DNA of 64,000 bases, from NCBI GenBank assembly GCA_019828565.1, contig JAHDYR010000015.1, positions 842,986 to 906,985 on the forward strand, given 5' to 3'. The stretch is from Carpediemonas membranifera BICM (lineage: Eukaryota; Protista; Fornicata). This document shows, piece by piece, positions 9,682 to 57,500 of this stretch (its first letter is position 1; each line of letters begins with the position of its first letter). Under the pieces are notes generated by a model. The model made no database searches. It saw only the letters and a program-made list of their open reading frames with translations, and was not told the DNA's origin. Position numbers and translations under genes: made by a program.

Positions 9682-9773
9682 GGTTCAGGAGATAGCAAGT
9701 TCACGAGGTGCAGTTTTAGGCCAGCATCGATGGTGCAGTTTATGCGCGTCACTAATGTGCTATTGAAGGGTCA

Positions 9774-9798
9774 AACAATGTGTTTATACTGCGCAACA
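9774..9798 (+). repeat. Left 25-bp direct repeat (putative TSD) of Fanzor element 1
   Basis: AACAATGTGTTTATACTGCGCAACA, identical to 11340-11364. Confidence 0.9.
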
Positions 9799-11339
9799 CT
9801 GCCCTGTCTCCCTCCTACTCACGTCTTAAGTCGGTAGGGAGATCGTCTTCTCCAGGGCTTCCACAAAGCGTCTTCTTCGTGGACGTCAGCACAGCTGCAA
9901 ACATCACAATCGCTCACACGTCATCTCATTGTCTTCTATTCCACATTAAATTCACTTCTACACTTGTATAGGCTGGTAATGGTGTTCATCGTCGGCTCTA
10001 TATGTGTGCGTCTGGGCAATTGCAGACGGAGTGGAGACGTTGAGTGGCCTCATCAGCCACTTCAACGGGGAGTACTCGATGTCGCTCCGCCAGCCTCGCC
10101 TCGTGCCAATCGTGCCCATGGCCCCCGTCCGACCGGGCTTCATGGCCTACAGTGAAACGATGGGCCTACTGAATGATAATTTCTGCCATCGTGTGGGAAT
10201 TAATCCCACACTCCCACACGCCACCAAACCGTTGACAGAAGAGCAGGAGGAACAATACCAGAACAACCCAAGGTCAATGTGCCGTCTGCTCAGCCTGAGT
10301 ACTGATGGGGTCTGTGTGGCGGTGACGGTTAAGCGAGGCGGCCGCTATCGGCCACAACATGATGCGAGCATGCCTGTTCGAAAGCGAGCGAAATGGCGGG
10401 AGAAAGAGCGCCCCCGACTCGGGACCAATAATGCCGAGGCTCCGCCCGCGCCGGATCCTGATGCCCACCTCATGGGGTTCGACCCGGGCGCGAGGTCCAT
10501 CGGAGGGTATTACATCAGGCACCCCGATGGCACCATCAGCTCCGGCGTCCTTCCAAAGTGCGGATACACTAAGACGCCAAGTTTCGGCTTTGATATGACG
10601 GCCGCGTCGTTCAAGAGCACAAGACTAGTGAGTATCAACAACTCTATTAGGTTTGTGCTGGACAACGCGAACGACATTTTCGAGGCTGGAATGCGTAAGT
10701 CTTTCCGACGAGTGCGCTTTGCGAACCACATCCTTCGCCAGAAGCACTTCGCCCGCTGCGGCCAACAGTTGGCTCGGGAGTTCGGTCGCCACCATCCCAT
10801 CGCCACCCCCATTCGCCTGAAAGTCTTCTACGGGAGCTCGGGATTCACCACGCCTGCTGGTATGTTCATTCCTTGCGCGCCATATCGAAAGTTCGCGAGA
10901 GAGATAGTACCCCTTCTCAAGGGGTATAACATTGTCGTCGATCTTAACATGGTTAACGAGGACCGCACCACCGTCGTCTGCCCTCACTGCCACGCCCCCT
11001 ACAAGCGAGTTCGTCCGCGTGATGACCAGCACGTTCACCCACATCGTGTGATGCTCTGCGAAAATCCACAGTACCGTGGTGCTCAGTGGCGCGCAACAGT
11101 TCCTGATGCTCTGAATGTTGATCATCGGGACAAGAGTGCTGCAGAGAACATCCTGTGGCGTTCTCTTGCCACGGAAGATGAGCTCAGTGGCTCTCCGTTC
11201 AGTCGCACATCGATCCCGCGCCTTCCAACATCATTCCAGTATCATCAATTGGCTAACCGCCAACATTCGTCTACGGACGGATGATGTTGTACAGTTTGGC
11301 ACTTTGATCGTTCCTTTTAGGCCCTGTCTGGGAGGTTCG
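9799..11339 (+). mobile_element. Fanzor element 1 (no transposase; internally deleted or N-truncated)
   Basis: Bounded by 25-bp direct repeats; contains only the Fanzor ORF; homologous to 31568-33963. Confidence 0.8.
10004..11284 (+). CDS. Fanzor1/TnpB-like RuvC endonuclease, N-terminally truncated (probable pseudogene)
   Basis: RuvC-I GFDPG; VFYGS (Gly at the canonical RuvC-II Glu site); relocated Glu in VNEDRTT; CPHC; RuvC-III HRDKSAAENI. GTG start with in-frame TAA at 9977; lacks about 230 aa present in copy 2. Confidence 0.88.
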   Translation: MCVWAIADGVETLSGLISHFNGEYSMSLRQPRLVPIVPMAPVRPGFMAYSETMGLLNDNFCHRVGINPTLPHATKPLTEEQEEQYQNNPRSMCRLLSLSTDGVCVAVTVKRGGRYRPQHDASMPVRKRAKWREKERPRLGTNNAEAPPAPDPDAHLMGFDPGARSIGGYYIRHPDGTISSGVLPKCGYTKTPSFGFDMTAASFKSTRLVSINNSIRFVLDNANDIFEAGMRKSFRRVRFANHILRQKHFARCGQQLAREFGRHHPIATPIRLKVFYGSSGFTTPAGMFIPCAPYRKFAREIVPLLKGYNIVVDLNMVNEDRTTVVCPHCHAPYKRVRPRDDQHVHPHRVMLCENPQYRGAQWRATVPDALNVDHRDKSAAENILWRSLATEDELSGSPFSRTSIPRLPTSFQYHQLANRQHSSTDG

Positions 11340-11364
11340 AACAATGTGTTTATACTGCGCAACA
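11241..11364 (+). ncRNA. Candidate omegaRNA 3' scaffold plus guide of element 1 (boundaries approximate)
   Basis: Hairpins 11249-11263 and 11264-11283 (cUACGg) covary with element 2. Confidence 0.55.
11340..11364 (+). repeat. Right 25-bp direct repeat of Fanzor element 1
   Basis: Identical to 9774-9798. Confidence 0.9.
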
Positions 11365-11553
11365 ATCGATCATCATGACCCAGACGAGGACGGTCCGCTT
11401 GATCGGGCCAGTCCTAGTCAGTACTACTCAGTACTAGTCAGTCACGAGCGACAGACTATTCTGGTGACATCATCCCGCCAGAATCCCGGGTAAAACCCCA
11501 ACAACATGGGCAACAAGGTCTTTACTCTTAGCATAAGGGACCTCCAAAGCCCC

Positions 11554-23537: not shown

Positions 23538-24425
23538 GCGGCTTGATGTAACGATAAAGAAACCATGAAGCTGGGGACCCTTGTATCAATACGAGGCTGC
23601 TTGCCTGGCAAGCGGAGGTGTGCGTGATGGAACCAGAAAACAACTGGCAAGACGGCACTTCCGTGCATCGTTTGGACGGAGCGCTGAGGATAGAACCACC
23701 GAGTGTGTAGAAATAGCAGCTCTGAAGTCAGACATGATCTATGCATATGTGCAGTTTATGCGCGTCACCAAAAAAGACAGAATGGGAGCGGGATTGTCCA
23801 TACCCCCGGCCAATGGAATGCCTCTATCCTCAAAGGATCCTGAACCTGTTGCTGATGATGGAAGTGAATTTGTTGCTCTCCCGTCGAACAGAGAACGGAG
23901 CACATATAGCACCTGCTAGAGAGAATAAAGCATCAGAAGTGCGTGCAATGTTACAGCAGGACTCAATGCCGTGTGATCTTCGCGCATATTCGAAAAGATC
24001 TGTGAGATGCAATTCGTGGTAGATTCAGTATGGGATCACAGAAATACGGCAACGCTCAAGCATTGAGGCCAATGCCATTCTTGGCGTGTCGGTTCATGGA
24101 GATTAGCTCACTGTGCCAGTCGTCAGATGCTTGCGTCAGACGGTGGCGTCAAAGTCAACCGTGAGACTCCCGAGTCTTGGTCAACTGATGATCCTTCTGG
24201 CCGCTCATGGGATGTCATTGGCCCAGCTACATCCAAGTGCGTGACTCAGTCTAGAGGTCATTCGTGGATCAGCCAGTTGCGGGGATAACTGGGGCGACAG
24301 GGATGAGGATGCCATGCCGCTGGCTGATATTTGGCTATTGGTGAGTAGTCCTTGTGGTAGTTGACAACCATGTCGGCTGGTTCCCTCTGACAGAAGCGAT
24401 TTGCCTTATCCTGCGTACTGACAGC

Positions 24426-25486: not shown

Positions 25487-27325
25487 TCAAAGGAAGTCAT
25501 CCATCGCCGTCGGAAGGAGATATTCGTATCTGTTTTCAGACAAGTAACCACCCCGCCGGAGAGAGTTGTCAGGCTTTCCGGCAAGGTACAGCTGGTCCTC
25601 GAATCTAAAGATCGAGAATTCGTCGTGGAAGTCGACGCTATCGACGCTGATGGGAACCTCGGTAAACGTCGTAATATCACCAGTCCGTCCGATGCCGAGC
25701 TGGCCGTTGTAGTTGCGGCCCGCAATGACCATCCTCTTGCCGTCCATGAGAGCCGTGGCGCAGTTGCCGAACTGCACCCTGTCTGGAGAGAAGCCGGTTG
25801 GGAGCTGAAGCCTGACGAACGAAGCGGCTGCCCGAACATCACCCATGCCGAGCATGCCGTAGTCGTTACCACCAGAGGCGACCGTGCCCGCGGGTGTGAC
25901 GAGAACTGTGCGGCCGTGCGTCATAAACAGTGCGGTGACGAGCTCGTCCTTGTGCCACATGGGCAGGCTAGCCTCGTATTTGGCTACAAACGGGCAGGCG
26001 GCGAAGGTGAGGCGGGCGGGCAGGGTCCCGAACCTCTGGGAGCCCATGCCCAGACCGCACTTGATCCCCCAGCCGTAGAGACCGCGAGGGGTGACGGCGA
26101 TCGTGTGGTGCTTACTGACGTAAATCTCGACCACAGGCGGGACGTGAACGCGGCGGTACTGGGGCAGGTAGATCTGCCGGGCGTCGTCGACGGCAACACC
26201 GGTCTGCTTGTTCTCGTTGGCTCCTCGGGCAAAGACGCGGCCAGCGTAGTGGCGGGTGAACGTCTTCTTGCCGTAGAGCTCGGCAATATGGCAGACACCG
26301 TCCTTGTCAGCCTGGCGGAAGCTGAAGAAGAACTTGCGGCAGAGGAACCAGAGGCACTTGGCCTCGGGTTCATAGTCCTTGTGAGATTCGATGAAGAGAA
26401 CGGGGTCCGCGCCAGCCTGGAGCAGGATGGCCCAGATCGTGCCCTGGAGAAGCGTGTAGAGGCGATCGGGGAGCTCCTCGCCTTCGAGTAGGGGGATGTT
26501 CATGCTAAGGCGGGGGCCGCTGGTGAGAATGCGGCGGGCGTGCTTGATCATGACCGCAGCGCGGTGGTTAGTCACTGTGAGGGTCGCTACAGCGTCGCAG
26601 AGGCCTTCGATCGAGTCGTTGAAGGCGGCAGGGGAGGAGGCGTCGTCGGCCGGAACGGGACCGCCGAACTGGTGGCGGTACGCGTGCTTGAGGAGCGAGG
26701 GGAGGTCGCCAGACACTGTCTGTGTGTGCTTGACTGCCAGGTGATACGCGGTGGCGAGTGCACGGCGCGTGCTTTCGAGGTTGACTTCGGCAGCCATCGT
26801 CTCGATCGTGTCGAGCAGACCACGAGGTTCTTCTTGCATATCCTCGTCCTCCGGGCTGAGCTCGAGCGTGACAGTGGCCTGAGCAGGGCTGTCGGACGTC
26901 GTAGGGTCGAGGCTGATGTCGCCTTGCACCGGTGAGGCTTGGGCGGACGAATTCTCGTCAAGGTCGAGGCCAAGGATCTCTCTGGCGGGCGAGGGGACAT
27001 ACTCGCTGGCTGTAGAGGACTCAACAGGGGAGTATGCGCTGAATTCCTCGAAGATGGCTTCTTCTAGGTTGCTTGAAAGCATGGTCAGGGAAGCACATAC
27101 GTCGCTGAGGATGCTGCGAGCGCTAGGCTTCGTGAAATGGATGGTCCGAAGCGCATTCTTAAGTTGCTCCAGTTGTTTGTCGGCGTTCTTCGCCACTTCT
27201 TGGACTTCTGTCCAAGTCTGAACGTTGTTCTGTTTTTGCGGACGGTCCAACGTGTTCGTTGTTGTCCCTTCAGTGAACGTAGGGCGAATGCGGTGCGAAT
27301 AGGAGAGCATTTCCTCTTTCTGCAT
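25487..27325 (-). CDS. RCC1/BLIP-II-like beta-propeller family protein
   Basis: GLYGWG, GNDYGMLGMG, GRNYNGQLGIG; family motif KCLWFLCRKFFF shared with two other copies in the window. Confidence 0.75.
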   Translation of the reverse strand: MQKEEMLSYSHRIRPTFTEGTTTNTLDRPQKQNNVQTWTEVQEVAKNADKQLEQLKNALRTIHFTKPSARSILSDVCASLTMLSSNLEEAIFEEFSAYSPVESSTASEYVPSPAREILGLDLDENSSAQASPVQGDISLDPTTSDSPAQATVTLELSPEDEDMQEEPRGLLDTIETMAAEVNLESTRRALATAYHLAVKHTQTVSGDLPSLLKHAYRHQFGGPVPADDASSPAAFNDSIEGLCDAVATLTVTNHRAAVMIKHARRILTSGPRLSMNIPLLEGEELPDRLYTLLQGTIWAILLQAGADPVLFIESHKDYEPEAKCLWFLCRKFFFSFRQADKDGVCHIAELYGKKTFTRHYAGRVFARGANENKQTGVAVDDARQIYLPQYRRVHVPPVVEIYVSKHHTIAVTPRGLYGWGIKCGLGMGSQRFGTLPARLTFAACPFVAKYEASLPMWHKDELVTALFMTHGRTVLVTPAGTVASGGNDYGMLGMGDVRAAASFVRLQLPTGFSPDRVQFGNCATALMDGKRMVIAGRNYNGQLGIGRTGDITTFTEVPISVDSVDFHDEFSIFRFEDQLYLAGKPDNSLRRGGYLSENRYEYLLPTAMDDFL

Positions 27326-31537: not shown

Positions 31538-31567
31538 TGAAGTATCATAGAGTGCACAGTGCAAGCA
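31538..31567 (+). repeat. 30-bp direct repeat (putative TSD) at the 3' end of Fanzor element 2
   Basis: TGAAGTATCATAGAGTGCACAGTGCAAGCA, identical to 33964-33993. Confidence 0.92.
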
Positions 31568-31640
31568 CTGCGTCTCTCCACTTCAATTAGCTTGCCCGGA
31601 GGCGAAGATTAGCGGCTGGTTAGCCGTAATTGGTGTATTG
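31538..31640 (-). ncRNA. Candidate omegaRNA 3' scaffold plus guide of element 2 (boundaries approximate)
   Basis: Hairpins 31608-31630 and 31591-31607 (cUCCGg) covary with element 1. Confidence 0.55.
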
Positions 31641-33963
31641 GGGTTATAGTTGGGAAGACGGGCTGGAGGTCTTGGATTTCTGAAAGCACTGGCTTGATAC
31701 TGTGCATCCGTCATGAGGCCGCAATCCAAGATGTTCTGTGCAGCAGTCTTGTCTCTGTGGGAGAGATTGAGCCAAGTGGTGGTAGTAGGATCGGAATTGA
31801 GGCGTTGCTGTCTGTACCAAGGAGCACCTTGACAATTCGGGTTGTGGCATCGCATCGTGCGCCTCGTGTAGCGAGTTCTACGGAACCTCGCGCGGCAGAA
31901 GGGGCAGACGAGTGAGGTTGTTCGGAACTCGTTAGTCATCCGCACTTCAGCAGTGATGTTGAAAGCTCTCCTGATGTGTGGTAGTAAGATAGCAAAGCGA
32001 CCATACGGCGCGCATGGATGCACCCGACGGGGCGCCTTGAATCTAGCGCTTCCGTAGAAGACAACCAGCCTGGTGGGGGCTGCCCGGGGAGGGGCAATAC
32101 TGCGAGGGAGTCGCCGAGGAGTCCATCCTAGGGTGCGAGCAAGCTGCTCCCCAGCTCTATGGAAGTGCTTTTGACGCAAGATGTGGTTCGTCAGGCGCAC
32201 TCTGCGGAAGCTCTTGACCATCCCAGCGTCGAATATTTCCTGCTCGTGGAGGAGCACAAACCTAACCGAGTTTTGTAGACTATCTAGATTTGTACTTTTG
32301 AATGACGCAGGAGTCATATCGAACGCGAAGCTGGGGGTCTTGGTGTACCCACACTTCGGGACCACACCGGAGCTGGTGGTGCCATCTGGGTGGCGGATGA
32401 AGAATCCACCCAGAGCCCGAGCACCCGGGTCGAAACCCATGAGGTGGGCATCGGGGTCTGGCGCGGGGCGAGCATCTGCGTCATCCACACCCAGACGCTC
32501 CCGAGCCTTTCGCTTCATCGTCGGGTTGCCACTGGCACGTCTGCTGACGTATGGCAGAGCACCAACTTGGACCGTGAGGTCCACGGCGACCCCATCTGTC
32601 TTGACAGACAGCACCCGACGGATGTTCGGAGGAAGAGCCTACAGCTGCTCTCGCGTCATGCGCTCAGTGGCGTGATGCTCCGGGTCGACCCCAAATTGGG
32701 CAAGCCAAGCCGGGTTCAGCACGTTGAGAGAACAGGGAACGTGCATGAACCCGGGGCGGACCGGAGCCATCGGGACAAGCGGAACAAGCTTGGGGCCAGC
32801 CAGCGGCTTGTCACCCGGAGGAGGTGGATGGGCGGTGTTGAATGCCGCAACCATATCCGTGAGCTCTCCCAGAGCCGCGGAGATCCGCCAGACGCAGGGC
32901 AGCGTGAGTAGAACGCCCTCGTCGACTCGTCCCGGAGTTGAGATCTTTGCAAGGTGCTCATCAACGATCGCCTTGATAGCGCGTTGTTCGGTGCGCAACC
33001 GGGTGATGTCGTCCCGGGGCACGTCTGGATCACGCTGAGTCAGGGCAGTGTCGACCCGAGTGATGATCTTCGCCAGGCGCCAGCAGTAACCTTCAAGGGC
33101 CTTGACGAGCCACAGCTTGGTGCTCGTGGCATATTCGCCCAGCCACACGTCGAAATCGCCAGGGCACTGTTGACGAGCTGCCCTGAAGGCGGTGCAGAGG
33201 CGGATGATGAACTCGTCATGCCACAGTGGCATCTCGGCTATTGAGGTGACAACCTGCCGAACTGCGGCGTATTTTTTCGCGCCCAGGAAGCGGTCGACGA
33301 GTGAGTCGGCGGCGAGGTTTCGGTACTCTCCACTTCGTCGGTAGGCGACGATAACGATGGCCTGGTGCAGAGCCTGGTCATGCACGGGCAAGGAGAGATT
33401 GGCGGGGTGGCAACACGCGGCGATGTATGACAGAATGCAAGTGTGAAAGTACTTGGCCTTCGTGAACGAGCAGAGCTTGTTCTCCAATCCGGCGTAGAAG
33501 TCCGCGATGAAAGGAATCACGTTTCTACGGTTATGGAGAATGGAGGATATGGAGAACTTGACCGTATAGATGCTGGTCATGTGAAGCTCTGCGTTTTGCG
33601 GTGAATGAACCGATCACTTGTGTGTACAACACACATCAAAGACGACAGACGTTTAATGAACGAGACTATGCAGTGATAATGGCGAGAATTAGAAGAACTG
33701 AAGTGTTTTATCTTCAGGCAGCGGCATAGAAGAGCCCGCTGTGCGATGGAAGGCCATGGTGATGATTGCAAAAACGTCATGATCAAGACCCCGAAATCCG
33801 ACAAGCAGAAGAGAGCGGATGGAAGTAAGATGGGGTAGACGATAGGTGGGAAGCTAGTTGCTTTGCGAGAGGACTGGAGAAGCACTGATTGATGACCCCC
33901 GATGATGACTGACTATCGAAATATCACTCTCAAGAAGAAGGAAGGGAGAGCGGGAAGGGGTAA
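31568..33963 (-). mobile_element. Fanzor element 2 (2.4 kb, apparently full length, no transposase)
   Basis: Bounded by 30-bp direct repeats; single ORF plus 383-nt 5' leader. Confidence 0.82.
31583..33580 (-). pseudogene. Full-length (665-codon) Fanzor1-type RuvC endonuclease with one in-frame TAG at 32639-32641
   Basis: Track ORFs 32639-33580 and 31583-32614 are in the same frame (REQL*ALPPNIRRVLSVKTDG). Motifs FDPG, VFYGS, NEFRTT, CPFC..CHNPNC, HRDKTAAQNI. Confidence 0.88.
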
Positions 33964-33993
33964 TGAAGTATCATAGAGTGCACAGTGCAAGCA
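33964..33993 (+). repeat. 30-bp direct repeat at the 5' end of Fanzor element 2
   Basis: Identical to 31538-31567. Confidence 0.92.
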
Positions 33994-34222
33994 GTAAAAC
34001 AGACTCTCAATTGTCTATACAGACTTCATAGTTTGAAAGTGCAGGATTGTGCAACACGATTAGCGGTTCGAGAACATGGCTATTAAGACGCCCGTGGAAG
34101 TTTTTCACGGGGGACATGGGAAAAATACACGACATGGGCATTTTCACAGCTCGCGAAAGCATTTTATTCAAAGCCTCACATACTGGAGACAGGTTTGTTC
34201 CTAGGAGTCAACATGCGTCCTT

Positions 34223-36132: not shown

Positions 36133-37932
36133 TTACTGCTCGACCCACGGGTCGACGTCGACTGGAATCAACTCACAATACACATTTGGGAGACGGTTTG
36201 GTCTGCACTTAACCGTCTTAGCCACCCCATCTGACACAATCTTCACCTCAAACCATTGGCCGGCGGTGTCACGGAATTGATTGACTCTTCTTGCACGCAC
36301 ATATCTTGAGCTAAATGCTGTGGCCTCAAAGGGCACACAGCACTGGTATTCTTCATTTTGTAGGTTAGTCTGGCCCTCGGAGACCCAGGCGAGAGCAGAT
36401 ATACGACAATATTCCTTCTTGACGTGGACGTGACCCACGAAATAATAGAACCCCTTGACTCTCTCTGGGAAGCGGAGCGGGGTGGGTGTGAGGCACTTGT
36501 CGCCCTTACTGTATCCGGGTAGCAGGCCCGACTGGGCGATATGAGCGGGAACATAGCCGGCAAACAGCATCTTTCGGTCGCAAAGGAAGATATTATTGCA
36601 ACCCTCCGTTCTCAGGATACGGTCGACCCCGAATGGCAGGTCGACGAAGCCATTCATATAATTGTTTTGATGCCCGAGTCCCAGCTGGCCACAAGAGTTG
36701 TTCCCACTGATCACCTGCCGATCGCCCTTGAGAGGATGACAGTCGCTCTGAAATCACCCACATGCATGATGTGATCTGGGACAAAGCCAGTAGGCACGGC
36801 GACTGGGTGGAAGAGATGGCTGTTCTCCTCGACTGGGCCGACGAATCGCGCTGGCGTCGCACCAGCCATGACAGTGCCGACTGGGGTGAGTATGAACGTC
36901 TGATCTCCCTTCCTCGACACATCAGTCGCCATCCTGTGCTTCTCCCAGGCGGGCAGGCTCGCCTCGAGCTCGGCGATCTTGGGGCAGGCGGGGAAGGTGA
37001 GGCGGGTCGGGTCGACGAACTCATATGACCTGAACCCCAGCTCATCATATCGGCTAGTTCCCCAGCCCCAAAGGCCCTTGGGCGTCCTGGCAATGTGTGC
37101 GATTCCGCTGCTGTAGACCTCGAGGGCCCTGGGCATCCTGGCCCTGGTGAGGGCGGTGTGGTGGTCAGTGTCGAGCATGAAGAGTCGGCCCATGTACATG
37201 CGGTGGTGGTAGCATCTTACTCGCGGAGAGTAGTGATAGCACTCGCCGTCCTTCTCGGCGACGTTCATCGTAAAGAAGAACTTGCGGCAGAGGAACCAGA
37301 GGCATTTTCCTTCGGGCGTTAGAGCGTTGCGGATCTTGTCGTGCATCTCGGACCCATGAGGCTGCTTCGCTCTAGCCTCCTCCAGCACCCTGTCCTCGAG
37401 GTCGGGGTTGGCCCAGCCACCAACCAGACACGCCCACACCGCGCCCTGGTTGAGTGTGAAGAGGCAGGGTGGGAGGTCCTCGCCATCCGCGAGCTCGATG
37501 GACAGCGGGGGGTTGTGAGAGAGTATCGCGATAACCCGGTTGACAAAGGTGATGGTGGAGGTTGAGGGACAAGAACGTGTTAATCGCCTCATTGGTTGTG
37601 GCTTGGTTGGCATCGCCGCCTTCGTCCGGGATTTCCTCGCCGAACTCGTGAGTGAAGGCCTCTCGCATGAGAGTGGGAATGTCACCTGGCAGATCCACAT
37701 ATTCGCGCAAACTGATGGAATGCAAGCTAATCATTGCATCACGCTAGACGTCTCTGCCACTCTTGGGCGTCGAAGACCGCATGGCGGCGAGGCGAGCGCG
37801 AGAAGCATCCATCCAGGCGAGGCGGGTATCGATATCCTCGTCAGGAAGCTCCATTCCGTTCAGCTTAGCAATTTCGGTATCAACATTGCTAATACATGCG
37901 TCCAGCGGCTGAAGAGTATCGTGAACTGCCAT
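36133..37932 (-). pseudogene. RCC1-like family member, disrupted (in-frame TAG at 37744, frameshifts near 37570 and 36730)
   Basis: Four consecutive ORF pieces; KCLWFLCRKFFF, GLWGWG, GNNSCGQLGLG. Confidence 0.75.
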
Positions 37933-38254
37933 CGTTTCAAAAACGAGTCGATCGCCCGACTCGACTCGACTTGACTTGGACCTTGACAACATTCCTGCAG
38001 CGTCTGCAATTCCTCATTAAATCTATGTTTGTACAGCTTGAGCGTGGGATGGCCGTCGCCGTGTGCCTGGACCCGCGTCAGGCTGAAGCTGCAAGCACAA
38101 GAACGTTTAATAATCTTCTCGATTTAGGCAGACACGCATTAACACGTAAAGCATTGGAATGGGATGGCCGTCGCCGTGGGACGGGACTTGTCCATGCAAC
38201 AGGACGAAGACTGCAACGGCAGTACATGAGCACAAGCAAACATGAATAACAAGA

Positions 38255-39196
38255 CTAGAAGACGTCTGTCACTCGCTTGACTCTCCTCCGGGTCTGCTTC
38301 ACTGCCCCCGTCTCCGCAATGTGCGCCTTAAGCACCTCTTTCGTGACGGCATTTCCCGCCTCTTCCAGTGCCTCCACGGGTGCTTCGAGCGCCTTGGTCG
38401 GCATGGCGGCCATGATGTCCGCCCTGAGCTCTTCGGCCGCGTTCTGCTCGTGAATGGGAGTCTTCTTGCTCGGCTCGATGGCGAATCTTATCTGAAGAAC
38501 CTCAGACCCTCCAACGTTGTTGCCTGTCAGCGCCTCCTTCGCAAACTCAGCCTGGGCGCGGGTCTTGTACTCTATAAAAGCCACATTCATGGATGAAATG
38601 TAATTAAACTGCACAAATTGTCCGAACAAACCAAAATGGTATCTCAGTCGCTTGTCCAGCCCCGGCTCATGCGAGGGTAGGTTCGACACGCGGAGGGTGC
38701 GACACTCCTTCAGTCTGGCAGCAGAAGAGGGGTTCCATCCGAACCTGGGCCGGCCGAAGCAATCCTTCGTTTCAGGAATGTGGCGCTGGTGATGCGTCTC
38801 GGGGATGCGATGAAGGTACTCGCATGCCTCGCCGCGCCAGCACTGGCCGCGGGCAAAGAACACACAGAAGCGGATGGGCGGGCGGAGCTTGTCACCCTGG
38901 GTTCGGCCTACGTCGCGGGCGGGGTCACAGCGGAACACGTTCTTCACCACAGCGTCCTTCTCCTTGTCTAAGCCCGGCCTTGAGTGATACCAGATGTTGT
39001 ATAAGCCCTCATACGCCTCGGCTTCGAGATCAGGGCGCTTGATCTTCAGTATTTCCTTGCTAATCTGAGGGCGGGCTGGTTTTTCCACTTGCGAAGAGAA
39101 TTGACGCTCAAACATGGCATATTTCTCTTTCGTAAGAGTTACAGCCTCTGCCTCAGTTTCAACGGCTGGAGTCTCTTTCAATGCAGTATCTGCCAT
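38255..39196 (-). CDS. CWC2: Pre-mRNA splicing factor Cwc2 (Torus/CCCH zinc finger plus RRM)
   Basis: YNIWY, FRCDPARDVGRTQGD, FCVFFARGQCWRGEACEYLHRIP, DCFGR, AEFAKEAL. Confidence 0.92.
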   Translation of the reverse strand: MADTALKETPAVETEAEAVTLTKEKYAMFERQFSSQVEKPARPQISKEILKIKRPDLEAEAYEGLYNIWYHSRPGLDKEKDAVVKNVFRCDPARDVGRTQGDKLRPPIRFCVFFARGQCWRGEACEYLHRIPETHHQRHIPETKDCFGRPRFGWNPSSAARLKECRTLRVSNLPSHEPGLDKRLRYHFGLFGQFVQFNYISSMNVAFIEYKTRAQAEFAKEALTGNNVGGSEVLQIRFAIEPSKKTPIHEQNAAEELRADIMAAMPTKALEAPVEALEEAGNAVTKEVLKAHIAETGAVKQTRRRVKRVTDVF

Positions 39197-39349
39197 GCTC
39201 GCTGTAGTAGTCGACCCAACCCCGAGTCGTTCCTGAAAAGAGGAAAAGGACGACGCCGGGCGATGTATTGAGGCAATTTCAGCCTTTACTAGACACGGTT
39301 GCCGCGGAATGAGCTGAGATGGTGATTAAATCAAACGGAAAACGACAAG

Positions 39350-39855
39350 ATGGATAAGAAAACACTTGGTGAGAGGATTAGCCGCGTTTCAGAGACAGCT
39401 ATTGGCGGTATGTCTATGGTTGCACTGCTCAATGAGTTTGATACCCTATTTGCTGATTCTGGTTTGTCTTTTTCCCATCATCTCACGCATATGACAAGAT
39501 AGCTCTCTGTGAAGGCTTATTGACCGCCATTTCAGAAGTTCAATCAGACGTATGCTACATTCCCTACTCTATTTATCACACAGCTTGCTGAATCGCTGAA
39601 CAAGTTTGACGAAACCTCCATACAACAGCAAGTCCTCCCCCAGCAAGCTCACACAGGATCTTTAGTGCCGTCAAGATGATCGAACGCGATGTAACCAAGA
39701 CCAGTGAGCAGGTTTCCACCATCAATGACAGCATTGCTGGAGCAGGCCGGGACCTCTCGTACACGACTGACCTGAGGGAGGCACAGACCATGGCAGCTAA
39801 CCTGGACAAGGCCGTGGATCTGCTGGGGAAGAAGATGGTCGGCGGACAGCGCTGA
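39350..39855 (+). CDS. Small multi-intron helical protein (about 128 aa), absent from ORF track
   Basis: Introns 39408-39434, 39462-39490, 39550-39583 and 39628-39656 (GC-AG) give an uninterrupted 129-codon frame MDKKTLGERIS...GGQR*. Confidence 0.55.
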
Positions 39856-40178
39856 GTGCTTATATGAGCAGTCATTTGTCATTATCTGGTAAGCCTTGTA
39901 GCACCGTAAAGGGGCTCCGTTTGAACCGTTCCGTTTGTAGACCAGCATAAATGTCTCAGCTCGTCCCATTTACATAGATTACATGGTAGGCTTCAGCCTG
40001 TTACAGCCTGACCCACCTCCCTCCATCGGATGGACTGTGTGGCGTGGCATCATCTACTGATCACCAGTGCAGCGAGGCCAGGGTCTGCATCATGGTCATG
40101 TCTTGTGGCTTCGCAGCTTGCGTCTGCGGTCGGCGAGTCGTCTGAAAGATCCAAACTGTGAAGTGATCGCTGAAACGA

Positions 40179-41670
40179 ATGAACAGCGCTAATACCTCGC
40201 CGGAAGATGCTAGAGATACGATTATCTCCGCGTTCCGCGCCTCGATCACCGCAACTGCTTCCATCGCCGGGGACATCCCCTCGTTGCTCTCGCACGCTTA
40301 CTCCAGACACTTCGATGAGCAAGTACCATTGATCCCCAGTGTAGAGAGCACTGCTGCATCAACGAGCGCCGATTCTCTCGATTCCCTCCTCGCCACGCTC
40401 TCAGAGATCCCCCCTCTCAAACCATCCGCGCAAGCCCTCCTCGACCGCGCCCGCTCGATCCTCACCAGCGGCCCCCCGCTGTCCATGAACGTCGAGCTCG
40501 CGGATGGCGAGGACCTCCCACCCTGCCTCTTCACACTCAACCAGGGCGCGGTGTGGGCGTGTCTGGTTGGTGGCTGGGCCAACCCCGACCTCGAGGACAG
40601 GGTGCTGGAGGAGGCTGACGCCCGAAGGTAAGTGCCTCTGGTTCCTCTGCCGCAAGTTCTTCTTCACGCTGAACGTCGCCGAGAAGGACGGCGAGCTATC
40701 ACTACTCTCCGCGAGTAAGATGCTACCACCACCGCATGTACATGGGCCGACTCTTCATGCTCGACACTGACACCACCGCCCTCACCAGGGCCAGGATGCC
40801 CAGGGCCCTCGAGGTCTACAGCAGCGGAATCGCACACATTGCCAGGACGCCCAAGGGCCTGTGGGGCTGGGGAACGACCCGCCTCACCTTCCCCGCCTGC
40901 CCCAAGATCGCCGAGCTCGAGGCGAGCCTGCCCGCCTGGGAGAAGCACAGGATGGCGACTGATGTGTCGAGGAAGGGAGATCAGACGTTCATACTCACCC
41001 CAGTCGGCACTGTCATGGCTGGTGCGACGCCAGCTTCCACCCAGTCGCCGTGCCTACTGGCTTTGTCCCAGATCATATCATGCCTGAACGGAACCGCACC
41101 ATCATCCTATCCATGGGCGATCGGCAGATGATCAGCGGGTGGAATATGTTTGGCCGGCTGGGACTCGGGCACAAGTGTGAGATGACTGGCTTCGTTGACC
41201 TGCCTTTCTGGGTCGACCGGATCATGAATTCTGACCTTTCTCGCTTCAACGTCTTCCTCAGCGGCCGTCAGCTGCTCTTCGCTGGCGAGTTTCCCCATTA
41301 TATCGCCCAGTCGGGCCTGCTGCCTGGGTACAGCATGCACAGCCGTTGCCTCACAGCCACCCCGCTCCGGTTCCCAGAGAGGGTCAAGGGGTTCTGGGGC
41401 AACAATGATCAGATGATCTGGGTCACTGATCGCCGCACTCATCTGTCTAGCAACGACAACCTGATCAGTGTGCCCTTTGAGGCAACGGCATTTGGGAGAA
41501 CTATGGTTCATGGTGATGCTAGTAGTGCGTTCTCATTCCGTGACTCGGCTGGCCAGTGGTTCGGAGTTGAAAGTTATTCCAATGGCGTGGCTGAGCTAGT
41601 CGAGTGTGAGGCCTCCAGATCGTGGCATGACATCATCTCCCTGGATATCGACCCAACCCCTCAATCATAA
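40179..41670 (+). pseudogene. RCC1-like family member with deletions and frameshifts; inverted near-copy of 36133-37510
   Basis: Long blocks identical to the minus-strand copy (ELADGEDLPPCLFTLNQGAVWACL, RARMPRALEVYSSG). Confidence 0.75.
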
Positions 41671-48832: not shown

Positions 48833-51800
48833 CTCCCCTTCCTGACTCCAAACCGTGACCGACTTTTCCTCTCCACCCGCCACTGACTACCAGCAGCCTT
48901 TGGCTGCCTCGCTGGCTCTGCCAGCTCGAGTTCTTCGTTTCTGGCCGGGACCCACGCGCCCTCTCCTCGCCACGCTCGACGTAGTACGAGTTTAAAGAGG
49001 GTCAGACATCGGCCAAACCTGGGGATTGGGCAGGGAAATTGATCCGCTCAAATTTTTCCCCTCCGAATTGGTCCACCTGGCCGGGCGTCGTCCGACCGCC
49101 GGGGCGCCCAGGTGGGGTCGTAGGACCCGCACAACCGGGGGGCGGGATCGCATGATGGGAGCGCCGGGCCGCGGACGCCCGTGTCCGGAGCCGTACGGCA
49201 TATTCGATCATAGTATAAACCGAACTCCCTCCTGGCGCCACTGTGTCGGAACTATTTAATAAGGTAAACCTGCTTGGTGGTAATAATGGCCACAACTATT
49301 CTGGAGCCCCACGACACACTACCTCTCCCCCGGGATAGTGGCCCACCGCAGTCTATGGTCTCGGGCGTACTGCTGCGCGAGCTCTACGTAGCGCAGGTTC
49401 AGCCAGGGCTCACAGGTTGGGGTGGCGTAGTCCAGCCACTTGACCTGGAGGGTCTTCTTCTTGCTGTCGTTGTCGCAATACCGTATTAATATTTATATAT
49501 TTTATGGGTGTCGTCTTGGTCCTACTTGGTCCGAGACGACACCAGTGTGTCGAAATAAATTAGCGCATCGTTACAACAGTGAATTCACTAGTGGCTACAT
49601 GTTCGGTAATATTTCTCTGCCGACTCTGAGCGTTGAGACATTGACTAGCGAAACCTGGCGCTCATTTAAGAGGGATGCCGCCCGAATCAAGGCGTTGTAT
49701 CCCGCCGCCAAGCTGGCTGTCCTCCTCCCCAATGACCTGCAGGACATCATCGAGGACACTCTCAACGTAGACCTGGCGAAGGCAAATGACGACAAGATTG
49801 ACGAATACGTCAGCAAGTTCCTTGCTCCGGTGGACAAATTGTCCCTTGTCAAAGAGCTCGAGGCCGTCACCTGCCAGGTATCTGAAAAAGAATCACCTCC
49901 ATTCGCGCGTACGTCAGCGCGTTCTCAGCAGTTTTCTCTAAGGCCGAAGACATCGAAGAGTCCGACTCGGACGAGGACGAAGAGGAACAAGAAGAGGACG
50001 AAGAAGACATTTCCCCCTTTGAGAAGAACGCACGTAAGATCTTCCTTCAGGGGATCCGCCCATCCACTTTCCGCAAGGTCCTGGACTTTGAACTCAAGGA
50101 GCATCCTAAGAGGAAGTCACTTGCCGATGCATACGAGCTGAGCATTGCCCTCGCTCAAGAAGATGACGACGCTCGGGCTAAGGCCATTCGCTTTGGTCAC
50201 TACCAGGCCGGAAAGTCCTCCACCCGAAAGAAAGGAACGGCCGCAGGAGGCCAACCGCCTCGCCTCCCGGTCCCGGGCGCAGTTGCCTCAGGGGCCCCGG
50301 AGAAGTCTTCCACTCTCAAGCCGAACGACGTCAACCCAGCTTTGAAGCCTCCCCATCGTGCCTGTGGCAAGTGCGGCGGATGGCATTGGGATAATCAGTG
50401 CCCCAATGGGGCCCCAATGCGCTCTCGCCAAGAAGGAGGCGGCCTCCGGTCCAACCCGAAGAAGAAGGAGCCAATCGAGGCTAATCTCCTGGACACGGAC
50501 CCCGATGAGCCACTCAAAGTGTCTGGTCGTATAAACGACCAAGAGTATTCCTTTATTATTGACACTGGAGCACCAAAATCTATCATCTCCGCTGCGTCAG
50601 CAGAGGCCCTTGGCCTACAGACAGTGACCGGCCCGACCCTCCGCTTCAGAATGGCGAACGGTTCCATTTCGACAACTAACCACTATACTGAGGCTTGGTT
50701 ACACCTCACGCTGGCGGGAGCCCCAACGCGGTTTAAGGCGAAGTTCGCAATCCTCAGTGGGGACCGCGAGAAAATCCTTATTGGCACCGACATTCTTCGT
50801 GTACTCGGGCTTCTTACGAAGGATTCCTTATTCCTCCAGCTCGTAGCCGAAAATCTGAGCAAGGAGGACGGGGACGACATTCCGCTGAGTTTGAACCAGT
50901 TAGACGTCTCGGAGGACGTTGGTGCTGTTGAAATTCCCGAATCCGCGAGCGCCACGCTCCGAAGCGAGGTACGAGCGCTACTTGCTGAGTATTCCACGTT
51001 GTTCGGCCCCATTCCGGCTCAAGGAGCCAAGGTTGAACCTATGCGAATCCGATTGAATGACCCGGACGCCCTGGTCCAGGAACGAGCCCGGAGACTATCA
51101 GGGGAACGACGCCTTCAGGTGCGGGAAGAAGTAACCCGCCTACGCCACCTTGGCATCACCAGGAACAGCGTCGGACCGTTCTCCTCCCCCGATCGTGGTA
51201 GTGGATAAGAAGAACGGCGCCATACGCCTCTGTGTGGACTACACAAAGCTCAACATTCTCACCATTCGTGACCATTTTCCCCTTCCCGACTTGAAAACCT
51301 TCGTGCAGGGAGGCGGCGGGGGCTCAATTCTTCGCCAGCTTGGACTTGACGTCCGGGTACCATCAGATGCCCCTCCACGAGGAAGACAGAGCTATGACGG
51401 CGTTTGTAACACCTGACGACTACGAGGAGTTCAACCGAGTCCCATTCGGGCTGACTAACGCTCCGAGTTATTTCCAGCGTACCATGCAATCCATCCTCGC
51501 CCCGGTACTCCACCGGGGGGTGCTGGTCTATATTGACGACATCTTAATCTACGCCCAATCTGAGGGAGGAACTTATAGCACGCTTAGAGCAAACCTTCCA
51601 GTTGCTGACAAAGTATGACCTTCGGCTTAGCCCGGCAAAATGTGTGATCGGCGCGGAGGAGTTAGACATCGTGGGCTTCCACCTTTCCCGCGAGGGGAAG
51701 AGCATCGACAAGCGACGGATTGAAGCACTCACGTCGATAGAGGCTCCGAGCAATGTTTCAGGGGTCAGAACACTCTTAGGGATGTTTAATTACGTGATCG

Positions 51801-51935
51801 ACTTCATCCCAGCCGCGGCGGACCTTGTGGACCCCCTCTATGAGCTGATCAGGAACGCCGGTGAGCCATTCGTATGGGGACCACGCCAAGAGGAAGCCCT
51901 CGTGGCCCTGAGAGAGGCGGTAGCCCAAGAGACCG

Positions 51936-51948
51936 TCCTGGCTCAGCC
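51936..51948 (+). repeat. TSD of LINE A (left copy; right copy 58870-58882)
   Basis: TCCTGGCTCAGCC duplicated; removing the insert restores gypsy QETVLAQP-DPSLPWDVYTDAS. Confidence 0.92.
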
Positions 51949-51989
51949 CAGTTCACCAATGATTTCAGCAAAGTGGAAACACTTCGATC

Positions 51990-54522: not shown

Positions 54523-57500
54523 ATGGTAACCTACAAGATACTTAGTCTGAACACAGAGGGACACATAGGAAGAGGAAAGGACTTCACGGCGTCTATGGCA
54601 ACGGCGATTCAGCTAAGGTTGAAGGACATAGAGGCAGTACTCATACAAGAGACATGGAGAACGGCGAATACGAGGGTTCATTGCTTCATGGACCTTGACT
54701 ACGCACTAGCAGGGAGGGAGACGGAAGAGGACCTGGTCTTAGCCAACGAAAAACGAAAGGCGGATGTCAAAAGTCAGCACCGCATCAACCGACAACTAGG
54801 CATAGCAGGCAATGACGAACCTGCGCCAAGATGGAAGGGAACAAGGGAAGGCATCGGCACGATAGTGAGCCCACACGCAACTGCAAAGTGGGACATCGGC
54901 ATAACGGACAGCCTATCGGGAAGAGTGCAAGCCAGCATAATGAGAACCGGCAGGGACATACTAGTCATCAACGTGTATGGCCCTCCATCCGGCCACAGCA
55001 AGCAGGAGAAGGATGGATTCAGGGACACTATACAGAAGATCATGGACATGAAAGGGAGCATGGAGGCCATAATTATGGGAGACTGGAACATCGACCCAGG
55101 CCAGATGGAAAGATCCACCCGGTGGAAGGATATGATGGAGAAGCACAGGCTCAAAGCCATCATACCCAAGTCTGGGACGCTCACATCAGGAACATCAACC
55201 CCGGACTTTGCAGTGACAACACCAGGAATCCAGGGGGCGGAGATTGAGGTGGTAGAGTCTCAGAAGGTCGGGGTATGGGGCTCAGCACACAATGGAATCA
55301 CACTAGCATGGAAGGAACAACGGTACTATGGCAGAAGTGAGCGAGACGTGGCTCTGGCCATACCCGAGGTGCACACCTGGCCCATGAAAAGAAGGAGGGG
55401 CCAGTCACAGTCTCAAAGCTGAACAGGATCAAGAGCTCGGACCAATGGGAAGAGACTATAAGAGCATGCATGGGCGACCCAGTGAACAACAGGGGAGCAA
55501 AGGCAAGGGACAAAGTGTTCGGGAACGGAGTGTGGAGCGAACTCCAGCGAACCCCATGGACAGAAATAGGCAACAGGACCAGGAAGGAAAGGATGAAAGA
55601 GGAGCTGGAGAAATACTGGGGAGAGCGCAGGGCCAAATGGGTGGCCGACATCAGCAGAAGTGCAAAAGGGGGTATAGGGCCTCAAGGGCCTCAGTGGAAG
55701 CTGCCATCAGAAGGTGGTGGTGTGACAACCAATACAAGGGAATGCCGGAGAGCCTCCTCAAGGACGGAGTGATAACCACGGACAAGGCGGCCATCAGCGA
55801 GATCCTCTTGCAACAGTATGCTAGAGTCAGCAGAGGCAGGGAACCCACCTGGAAGACATGGAGGGGCAGGGACGGAAATGAGTTCAAGGAAAGCGAGGTC
55901 AAAGCCGCAATCAAAAAGGATCAGGAGGGACACCGCACCAGGGCCTGACCTCACATCTGGAGACATGCTGAGAGAGCTGGATGAGAAAGGCCTTAGGGAA
56001 GTGACGAGGCTCATCAACAGGGTCTACAGGGAGGGCGACGTACCCAAAGCATGGAAGTATGCCACAGTGTCGGCCATACACAAGACAGGGAAGCCAAGGG
56101 TCAAGCCGGAATCATATAGACCAATATCCTTGACACCACTGCTGTACAGGGTCTATGGTAGATTGCTCAAGATACGTCTGGAAGCAGCAACGAAAAGGTT
56201 CATACCAAGAGAACAGGCTGGTTTCCAGTCAGACAGGGACGTCATCCAGCAGATACAGTACATTGTGCAGCGGCACCAGGAGGGGGGTGAGACCACGTCA
56301 ATCTTTCTGGACATCGAGAAGGCATATGACACGGTACCAAGGGACATTCTCATGGATAAGCTACAGGGTATGGGGGTGGAGGAGCACTTGATCAGGGCAA
56401 TTCAAGGCACAATAAAGGAAACCTGGATATCAGTCAAGGGGGCAAAGGCATGGGAAAGAACCAACAGGGGAGTTAAGCAAGGGTGCGTCCTGGCACCGAC
56501 ACTGTTTGTGCTGTTCATGGCTAACTGGCCCCACCTGGCCAGAAAGAAAATCAAGGGAGAACGGTACGACATCAGAGAACCGCCAAGGACCACGAGCCAC
56601 CTCAGCGACCGACTACCGGCAGCACTTACCATGTTTGTGGATGACACTGCGGTCACAGGGAGCAAACCGGAGCATAGCCAGATGGTCGCCAACATAATGG
56701 TGGACATAATCAGAGAGCATGAAATGAGGGTGAACGCCCAGAAGAATGTAATGATTAGCGTGGACAGAACAGCCCTAGTCAGGATCGAGGGGGTAACACT
56801 ACTGCCAGAGAAGGAGGCGAGATACCTGGGATTATGGATCGCAAGTGGGAAGGACCCTATGTCGGCCTGCATAAGGCGGAAACAGGAGCAGAGCGAAAGG
56901 TACAAGAGACTGGTGAGATGGGCAGGGTGGACCAGGGCAAACATGCCAGCACTAGCGAGCAGGCTACTACTGGAAATATATATATGGCCCAGGATCCTCT
57001 TCGGAGTCGAGGTGTGGGGGAACGCACCGGGAGGTAGAAGGATCTGGAATGACTGGCAGGGAATCATGGCAGGAACAGGACCGGGAGGGGGCGCAGCCAT
57101 GAGGCTGATGAATGGATGGGTGGACCTCCAGGCACACATGGAATGGCTGGCAGTCAAAAGGATAGTCAACTACAGGGACCAGGATATACCAGTCAGAAAC
57201 AGAGAATGGGGGCGGGGCACGGTTATGTGGGAAGCTAGGGAGAGAGTGCAGCATCTACTGGAGGGCACCAGAGAGGGAGCCCCTAAACCAGCGCTACTGG
57301 ATTATGGCATGGAAACGATCAGGAGGGGGTGGATGAAGCGGTGCAAAAGCCGTACGGCACTAGGACTAATGGAAATCATGGGGACAAGGAAATTAAGCAA
57401 GTGTCTGCAAGGTAAGCCTACGGTAGACCGAAAGGCTGGGAAGGGGCAAAGCAGGGCGGAATGGAAGAGAATTGTATCCATTGCAGCCAATGTCAGCCCA

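Follow-up and report, generated by a model that had tools for sequence, protein, structure and literature searches.

An open reading frame with RuvC motifs lying between two identical 25-mers raises the question of what these repeats are, and how the element that carries them is moved and placed. The locus belongs to a 64,000-nt stretch of the Carpediemonas membranifera genome, hereafter the window, and the initial annotation had described it as a Fanzor element bracketed by the 25-mers, which were taken for long, variable target-site duplications (TSDs). Both 25-mers were present (9774–9798 and 11340–11364), and a search of the assembly (24.24 Mb, 69 contigs) revealed 246 matches to their 21-nt core compared with 0 for the reversed control, well beyond chance. 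The 25-mer is thus a dispersed repeat, a finding that the initial annotation itself had named as speaking against its reading.

DNA search of the genome revealed dozens of copies at 92–99% identity, running from window position 9756 to 11364, and the same 25-mer ended nearly every copy of this family (family 1). The copies ceased to match at 11364, the true right terminus, which ends in CA, whereas the left end lies 18 bp further out than the 25-mer, at 9756, so the 25-mers do not bracket the element. Family 1 therefore has the form TG...CA, beginning with TGTGC and terminating in CAACA; the complete element measures ~2.28 kb, and the window copy spans 9756–11364. The following features define its ends.

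9756..9798, plus strand: left-end unit, 43 bp, TG...CA, consisting of 18 left-specific bp and the 25-mer; also found alone with 5-bp TSDs
9774..9798, plus strand: left copy of the element-encoded 25-mer, holding a reverse-orientation site similar to the host motif M (see below)
9799..9820, minus strand: antisense-strand purine tract (19 of 22), directly adjoining the left-end unit and resembling the polypurine tract of LTR elements
11285..11364, plus strand: right-end unit, an 80-nt TG...CA hairpin starting directly after the stop codon
11340..11364, plus strand: right copy of the element-encoded 25-mer, at the true right terminus

The left-end unit (43 bp) and the right-end unit (80 bp) share 25 bp only, a sequence with which each of them ends. 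Family 1 has no long terminal inverted repeat (TIR), the ends sharing only TGT(T)GC, and thus lacks the TIRs of at least 45 bp that characterize Ginger2/TDD elements. Neither a transposase gene nor a poly-A tail was found within the element. Genome-wide, the end patterns of family 1 gave ~127 left and 102 right matches, and solo 43-bp left units between 5-bp TSDs were found at five loci (L067, L070, L073, L079 and L080). The copies were close to the majority sequence (median identity 98.3%); family 1 is recently mobile and multi-copy, and the proposal of a mobile Fanzor family in an unusual carrier without its own transposase was borne out.

Tabulation of the flanks over the genome copies revealed 5-bp TSDs rather than 25-bp repeats: a perfect, variable 5-mer stood beside the ends in 20 of the 29 two-ended copies. 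Among the others, the TSD was displaced in two (the window copy and L011) and carried a single mismatch in one, and the left and right flanks of L015 and L017 matched across the pair, as after recombination; most of the two-ended copies without a perfect TSD are explained in these ways. The reading of the 25-mer as a long TSD could draw on the identity of the two copies, on the absence of a TSD adjoining the ends of the window copy, and on precedents in IS481EU (~25 bp; PMC10045372) and in the CRe Fanzor elements of Chlamydomonas. However, the 25-mer is constant across copies and internal to the element, and the variable duplication at the true ends is 5 bp long; we therefore rejected this reading, which retains practically no probability. 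The presence of 5-bp TSDs also sets the family apart from IS200/IS605, IS607 and Helitron elements, which leave no TSD.

Two further families of related elements bear on the choice of insertion site, one of them with a copy in the window.

31538..34028, minus strand: sister family 2 element with TGAAGT...ACTTCA ends, a 30-bp terminal direct repeat, TSD AACTA, and M in reversed orientation

The family 2 protein shares 50–53% amino acid identity with that of family 1, and its ORF in the window is split by a single in-frame TAG at 32641–32639. Family 3 was represented by 83 left ends, many of which precede, by ~1 kb, the ORFs of a third Fanzor group. Chimeras between families were also observed (L044, L057 and P0009), combining the left part of family 2 with the right end of family 1, the left end of family 3 with a family 1 ORF, or the proteins of families 2 and 3; they probably arose by recombination in the conserved RuvC region. 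Separately, a repeated host gene family was noted at window positions 36133–41600 and 25500–27300 and in L061, with some members preceded by Fanzor left ends.

Alignment of family 1 left flanks revealed a host motif, M (GCAGKWTWAG), at positions -21 to -12. In 36 of the 48 flanks its first base stood precisely at -21, conservation was confined to -21 to -11, and positions -10 to -1 were random (≤0.15 bit). The strict pattern of motif, spacer and element end had 34 matches genome-wide and 0 in the control. Family 1 inserts 6 bp behind M, whereas family 2 uses the opposite side, the G of the reversed M lying at -13 in all five scored flanks and in one solo end; at locus L054, both sides of a single M are occupied, one by a family 1 copy and the other by a family 2 end. 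Of 17 reconstructed empty sites, 1 fell within a long ORF, compared with 44% of random sites, and 7 had a gene start within 120 bp, compared with 19% of random non-coding positions; insertion is mostly outside genes. An M hit was located at most 60 bp upstream of 4 of the ~25 window genes, one of these hits being the insertion site itself; a promoter role for M is plausible and weakly supported. Repeated insertion at one motif has left tandem or nested ends of different families at L011, L014, L066, L073 and L079, and the two head-to-head left ends that lie 53 bp apart at L062 and L063 (G000 C7) look like an insertion at the M-like site inside the left end of another copy.

The insertion site of the window copy comprises the following features.

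9710..9719, plus strand: host target motif M of the window insertion (PWM score 15.8), 6 bp before the TSD
9726..9730, plus strand: left copy of the real 5-bp TSD, ATCGA, equal to 11365–11369 and at the 6-bp spacing behind M
9731..9755, plus strand: carried-along flank of 25 bp, with a TG start, a second M (9735–9744), a spacer of 6 bp and a 5-mer resembling an older TSD
11365..11369, plus strand: right copy of the TSD, ATCGA, in the flank from which a guide RNA would be read
23748..23771, plus strand: empty M site matching the carried-along 25 bp, 14 kb away and a candidate former location of the window copy

M at 9710..9719 sits ~30 bp upstream of the ATG (9681) of a minus-strand gene similar to glucosidase II beta. 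The true TSD is displaced 25 bp outward of the left end, which is why the initial annotation saw no short TSD; L011 shows a similar displacement. The sole other genome match to the intervening 25 bp was the site at 23748–23771 (2 mismatches in 24, with 20 bp identical). The segment is probably a 5' transduction of an earlier target site, and from this clear case and the similar one we infer that excision of the window copy once used a cryptic TG/CA end, 25 bp out in the flank, and that the copy moved locally. Left flanks with the same motif, spacer and 5-mer were also shared between different contigs (G000 C8:530284 with L004, and G000 C40:42383 with L041), which possibly reflects carried flanks or segmental duplications. 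Neither a circle junction nor an empty allele was seen in the public data, which consisted of assembled contigs, so this is not evidence of absence.

As for the cargo, the ORF and its motifs (FDPG, FYGS, NEDRTTVVCPHC and RDKSAAENI) were present as initially described, but what remains in the window is a fragment.

10004..11284, plus strand: Fanzor1 ORF remnant, 426 of ~633 aa, with the ATG and ~208 codons deleted
10301-10309, plus strand: TDG motif, within the remnant
10481-10483, 10958-10960 and 11129-11131, plus strand: RuvC catalytic residues D, E and D, within the remnant

GFDPG and E-DRTTVV-C were found in the window and in nearly all copies, the Glu standing six residues ahead of the zinc finger. 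The assignment to Fanzor1 stood, but not the ground first given for it, since DPG and the shifted Glu are the fingerprint of all Fanzors, Fanzor1 and Fanzor2 alike (PMC10711439). The family satisfies the published Fanzor pattern, D-X(125-275)-[TS][TS]-XX-C4 zinc finger-X(5-50)-RD (PMC3627910), the window copy alone having Tyr for the fourth Cys. The WED motif TDG occurred in all three families, and the full-length protein of ~633 aa exceeds the 600 aa expected of Fanzor1 and comes without an IS607 serine recombinase. A profile search hit PpFz1 (2.4e-14), SpuFz1 (1e-13), GtFz1 (1.3e-7) and Fanzor2 (9.6e-6), these Fanzor hits being partly transitive because the profile included distant relatives; Foldseek, run with a model of low confidence (pLDDT 47), ranked SpuFz1 first (E 3.6e-5). 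Both predicted structures scored poorly (pLDDT 46–47), and the VIA searches were uninformative. On the TDG motif, the length, the profile hits and this weakly modelled structural match, the protein belongs to Fanzor1. The single protein had no Pfam hit above the cut-off and no PDB sequence hit. Homolog search returned 21 proteins, all from Carpediemonas; distant Fanzor1-like proteins outside this genus appeared at E 1e-6 to 1e-3, and no relatives were found in metagenome or viral contigs. On a soil contig (L082:5903-7999), imperfect inverted repeats of 30 nt flank P0048, a gene distantly similar to Fanzor1, as in an ordinary TIR element.

The window copy bears a 669-bp deletion near 10005, which removed the start codon and the N-terminal codons, and the Cys-to-Tyr change at the fourth zinc ligand (11072–11074) is found in this copy only among the 29; the window copy is probably dead. 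Similar deletions were present in about ten copies, and deleted forms therefore spread in trans. None of eight near-full-length copies was uninterrupted in the assembly, and some breaks, single bases in homopolymer runs (e.g., in L012), may be assembly errors; pN/pS was ~0.65.

The right end of the element has a pronounced predicted fold. The terminal 117 nt form two small hairpins followed by the 80-nt hairpin, which closes at the last base of the element (-34.1 kcal/mol, z -6.0; none of 200 shuffled sequences folded as well).

11249..11283, plus strand: two small hairpins in the last codons, kept with changed letters in family 2

The small hairpins would probably constitute the 5' part, and the 80-nt hairpin the main stem, of an omegaRNA scaffold. 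An omegaRNA of Fanzor1 runs from the right end ~15 nt into the flank. The predicted three-stem fold at the right end fits the three-stem RNA of Fanzor1 (PMC10711439); the public runs consisted of assembled contigs, which show neither RNA ends nor strand. The right-end unit had no match in Rfam. In two public runs, the element was deeply covered, neighbouring genes differed ~15-fold and intergenic flanks were uncovered, a pattern that is compatible with transcription and does not show it.

M-like sites lie in both arms of the family 1 right-end hairpin, and this raises the alternative that Fanzor itself picks the site, binding M as TAM or seed and making a 5-nt staggered break that is followed by insertion through repair or an integrase. 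Measured from the start of M, the cuts would lie at 16 and 21 nt in family 1; in family 2, the distances from the start of the reversed M would be 17 and 22 nt. Such spacing resembles the 5' overhangs of Cas12 and Fanzor. Against this, the target consensus departs from both hairpin arms at nearly fixed positions, which makes base pairing unlikely; the precision of the TG/CA ends suggests an integrase; and three diverged proteins would all need to read one motif, in two orientations. We regard site choice by the nuclease as improbable.

Instead, an integrase-family DDE enzyme is indicated by the TG...CA ends, the fixed 5-bp TSD and the solo ends; at least 150 rve integrase domains occur in the genome. 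The mover must act in trans, since deleted copies and solo left units have also spread. The variant letters of the 25-mer are informative about the substrate: 0 of 29 (4 of which come from one truncated end) were common to the other end of the same copy, although a variant of the right end recurred across 10 copies and a variant of the left end across 5. The two ends are therefore inherited separately. Because normal LTR reverse transcription would erase such end-specific variants, we favour movement in trans at the DNA level by an integrase-type enzyme, with moderate confidence. The mover would be a retroviral-integrase-type DDE enzyme encoded elsewhere, such as a Ty3/gypsy integrase or a Ginger2/IS481EU-like transposase, cutting at the CA ends on DNA and placed by an M-bound protein as Sap1 places Tf1. 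The element ends would probably descend from short LTRs; the antisense purine tract, at the same position in families 1, 2 and 3, suggests this ancestry. By analogy, an intact Fanzor, with a three-stem omegaRNA from the right end and a flank-derived guide, could cut empty alleles, whose repair would restore the element, and the window copy would most likely be a dead passenger that was once excised at the cryptic end in its flank.

Some observations sit less easily with DNA-level movement: the purine tract has no role there and would have to be a relic or part of a promoter, family 1 has no long TIR, and near-full-length copies are interrupted. No autonomous partner, combining these ends with a transposase, was found among 80 loci. 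The candidates rejected were L061, which has host genes between two left ends and whose specific sequence behind the left end is local only; L056, which contains an inserted Ty3; and other long loci with truncated ends. Five rve hits lie in open frames of equal length (654 aa; G000 C1:138311, C1:1816970, C4:532800, C19:65415 and C34:99609); being far shorter than full polyproteins, they may encode a stand-alone integrase or have a frameshift in common.

Alternatively, the family may be retrotransposed in trans by Ty3/gypsy particles, with antisense RNA packaged, non-standard copying that keeps two different ends, and insertion by Ty3 integrase. Such a route would account for the TG...CA ends, the 5-bp TSD and the solo ends with TSD, and for the tract abutting the left unit in antisense in all three families; short-LTR Ty3 elements are abundant in the genome, and the carried flank could be read-through. 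However, LTR reverse transcription makes LTRs identical, whereas these ends share 25 bp only and have never exchanged variants, and standard LTR reverse transcription was rejected by this end-synchrony test. Moreover, no primer-binding site or palindrome was evident behind the right unit, the strict pattern of a purine tract with an M-bearing LTR start occurred in 2 places only, and M was absent at the insertion spacing in the two Ty3 5' LTRs examined. Searches with the purine-tract/LTR-start pattern and with L061-specific sequence found no autonomous Ty3 family with these ends. We consider retrotransposition in trans rather unlikely, and DNA-level movement remains our preferred explanation.

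Ty3/gypsy sequences are present in the window at 49510–51950, the 5' part of an element with an LTR of ~70 bp followed by the 10-bp palindrome GTGAATTCAC at the would-be primer site; it is broken off by non-LTR-like elements to the right (endonuclease-like ORF starts at 54523 and 63977). Another Ty3, with an LTR of ~57 bp bearing an M-like site near its 3' end, is inserted inside a Fanzor copy at L056:1420-1505 (G000 C58, near 38.5 kb).

In the literature searched, no paper contained both Fanzor and Carpediemonas, none dealt with these elements, and we could not find a motif-targeted, integrase-type carrier of Fanzor1. Fanzor1 in varied carriers, some without TIRs, is already known (PMC3627910), and a 2026 review states that Fanzor-encoding retrotransposons are not known (PMC13565253). 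The protein resembles SpuFz1, PpFz1 and GtFz1 in its DPG, shifted Glu, C4 zinc finger, RD, WED TDG and length. As in the non-autonomous Fanzor1 carriers SPu-1 and SfAV, it is the only gene of a 2.1–2.3-kb element, here with a predicted three-stem right-end fold; unlike them, the C. membranifera element has a terminal direct repeat and no real TIR, a random 5-bp TSD, and no adjacent TAM-like sequence, the motif lying 6–7 bp away. A conserved TAM, which in Fanzor1 elements immediately precedes the left end and takes in the 5' TSD, is absent because TSD and spacer are random, and the usual model of TAM-based homing does not fit directly, as no conserved sequence stands beside the would-be protospacer. 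To insert at a base-exact distance from a host motif is unusual among Fanzor carriers; families 1 and 2 do so on opposite sides of M. Because random TSDs leave no TAM beside the element, the three diverged nucleases offer a direct test of whether Fanzor works without a TAM or with a distant one, which bears on the co-evolution of OMEGA nucleases and transposases and on compact editors with looser targeting.

Among integrase-type systems, TDD-4 and TDD-5 make 5-bp TSDs, and Ginger2/TDD elements have TIRs of 45–297 bp and encode their own enzyme (PMC2836005). The C. membranifera family resembles them in its TG...CA ends, 5-bp TSDs and, on the explanation favoured here, movement at the DNA level by an integrase-type enzyme, and differs in having neither TIRs nor an encoded enzyme. 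IS481EU of parabasalids likewise combines a metamonad host with an integrase-like DDE enzyme, the latter inferred for our family, but can make TSDs of ~25 bp (PMC10045372), whereas our family duplicates 5 bp and carries the 25-mer as part of the element. The placement recalls Tf1 of fission yeast, which is positioned by Sap1 with insertions at fixed offsets: in both systems, insertions occur in intergenic DNA to either side of a host motif, at distances constant to the base (PMC5741268). Unlike the autonomous Tf1, the C. membranifera family is non-autonomous, its motif-binding protein and integrase being postulated; such targeting would represent a naturally occurring case, in a metamonad, of precise integration between genes.

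Non-autonomous Ty3/gypsy LTR elements of the TRIM/LARD type have TG...CA direct terminal units, a 5-bp TSD, a purine tract and solo ends, all of which recur here, with the tract abutting the unit. The family differs from them in its units of 43 and 80 bp, which are not homogenized, in that no primer site is seen, and in a cargo gene that runs against the purine-tract strand. A tentative and on balance doubtful synthesis is that Fanzor1 was captured in a shell derived from LTR ends, with a Ty3 integrase tethered to the host motif and nucleases that are TAM-free or read M from 6–7 bp away. Taken as a whole, the family encodes a Fanzor1 and works like an integrase-mobilized, motif-targeted element, and it departs from both LTR elements and Ginger2 in defining features.
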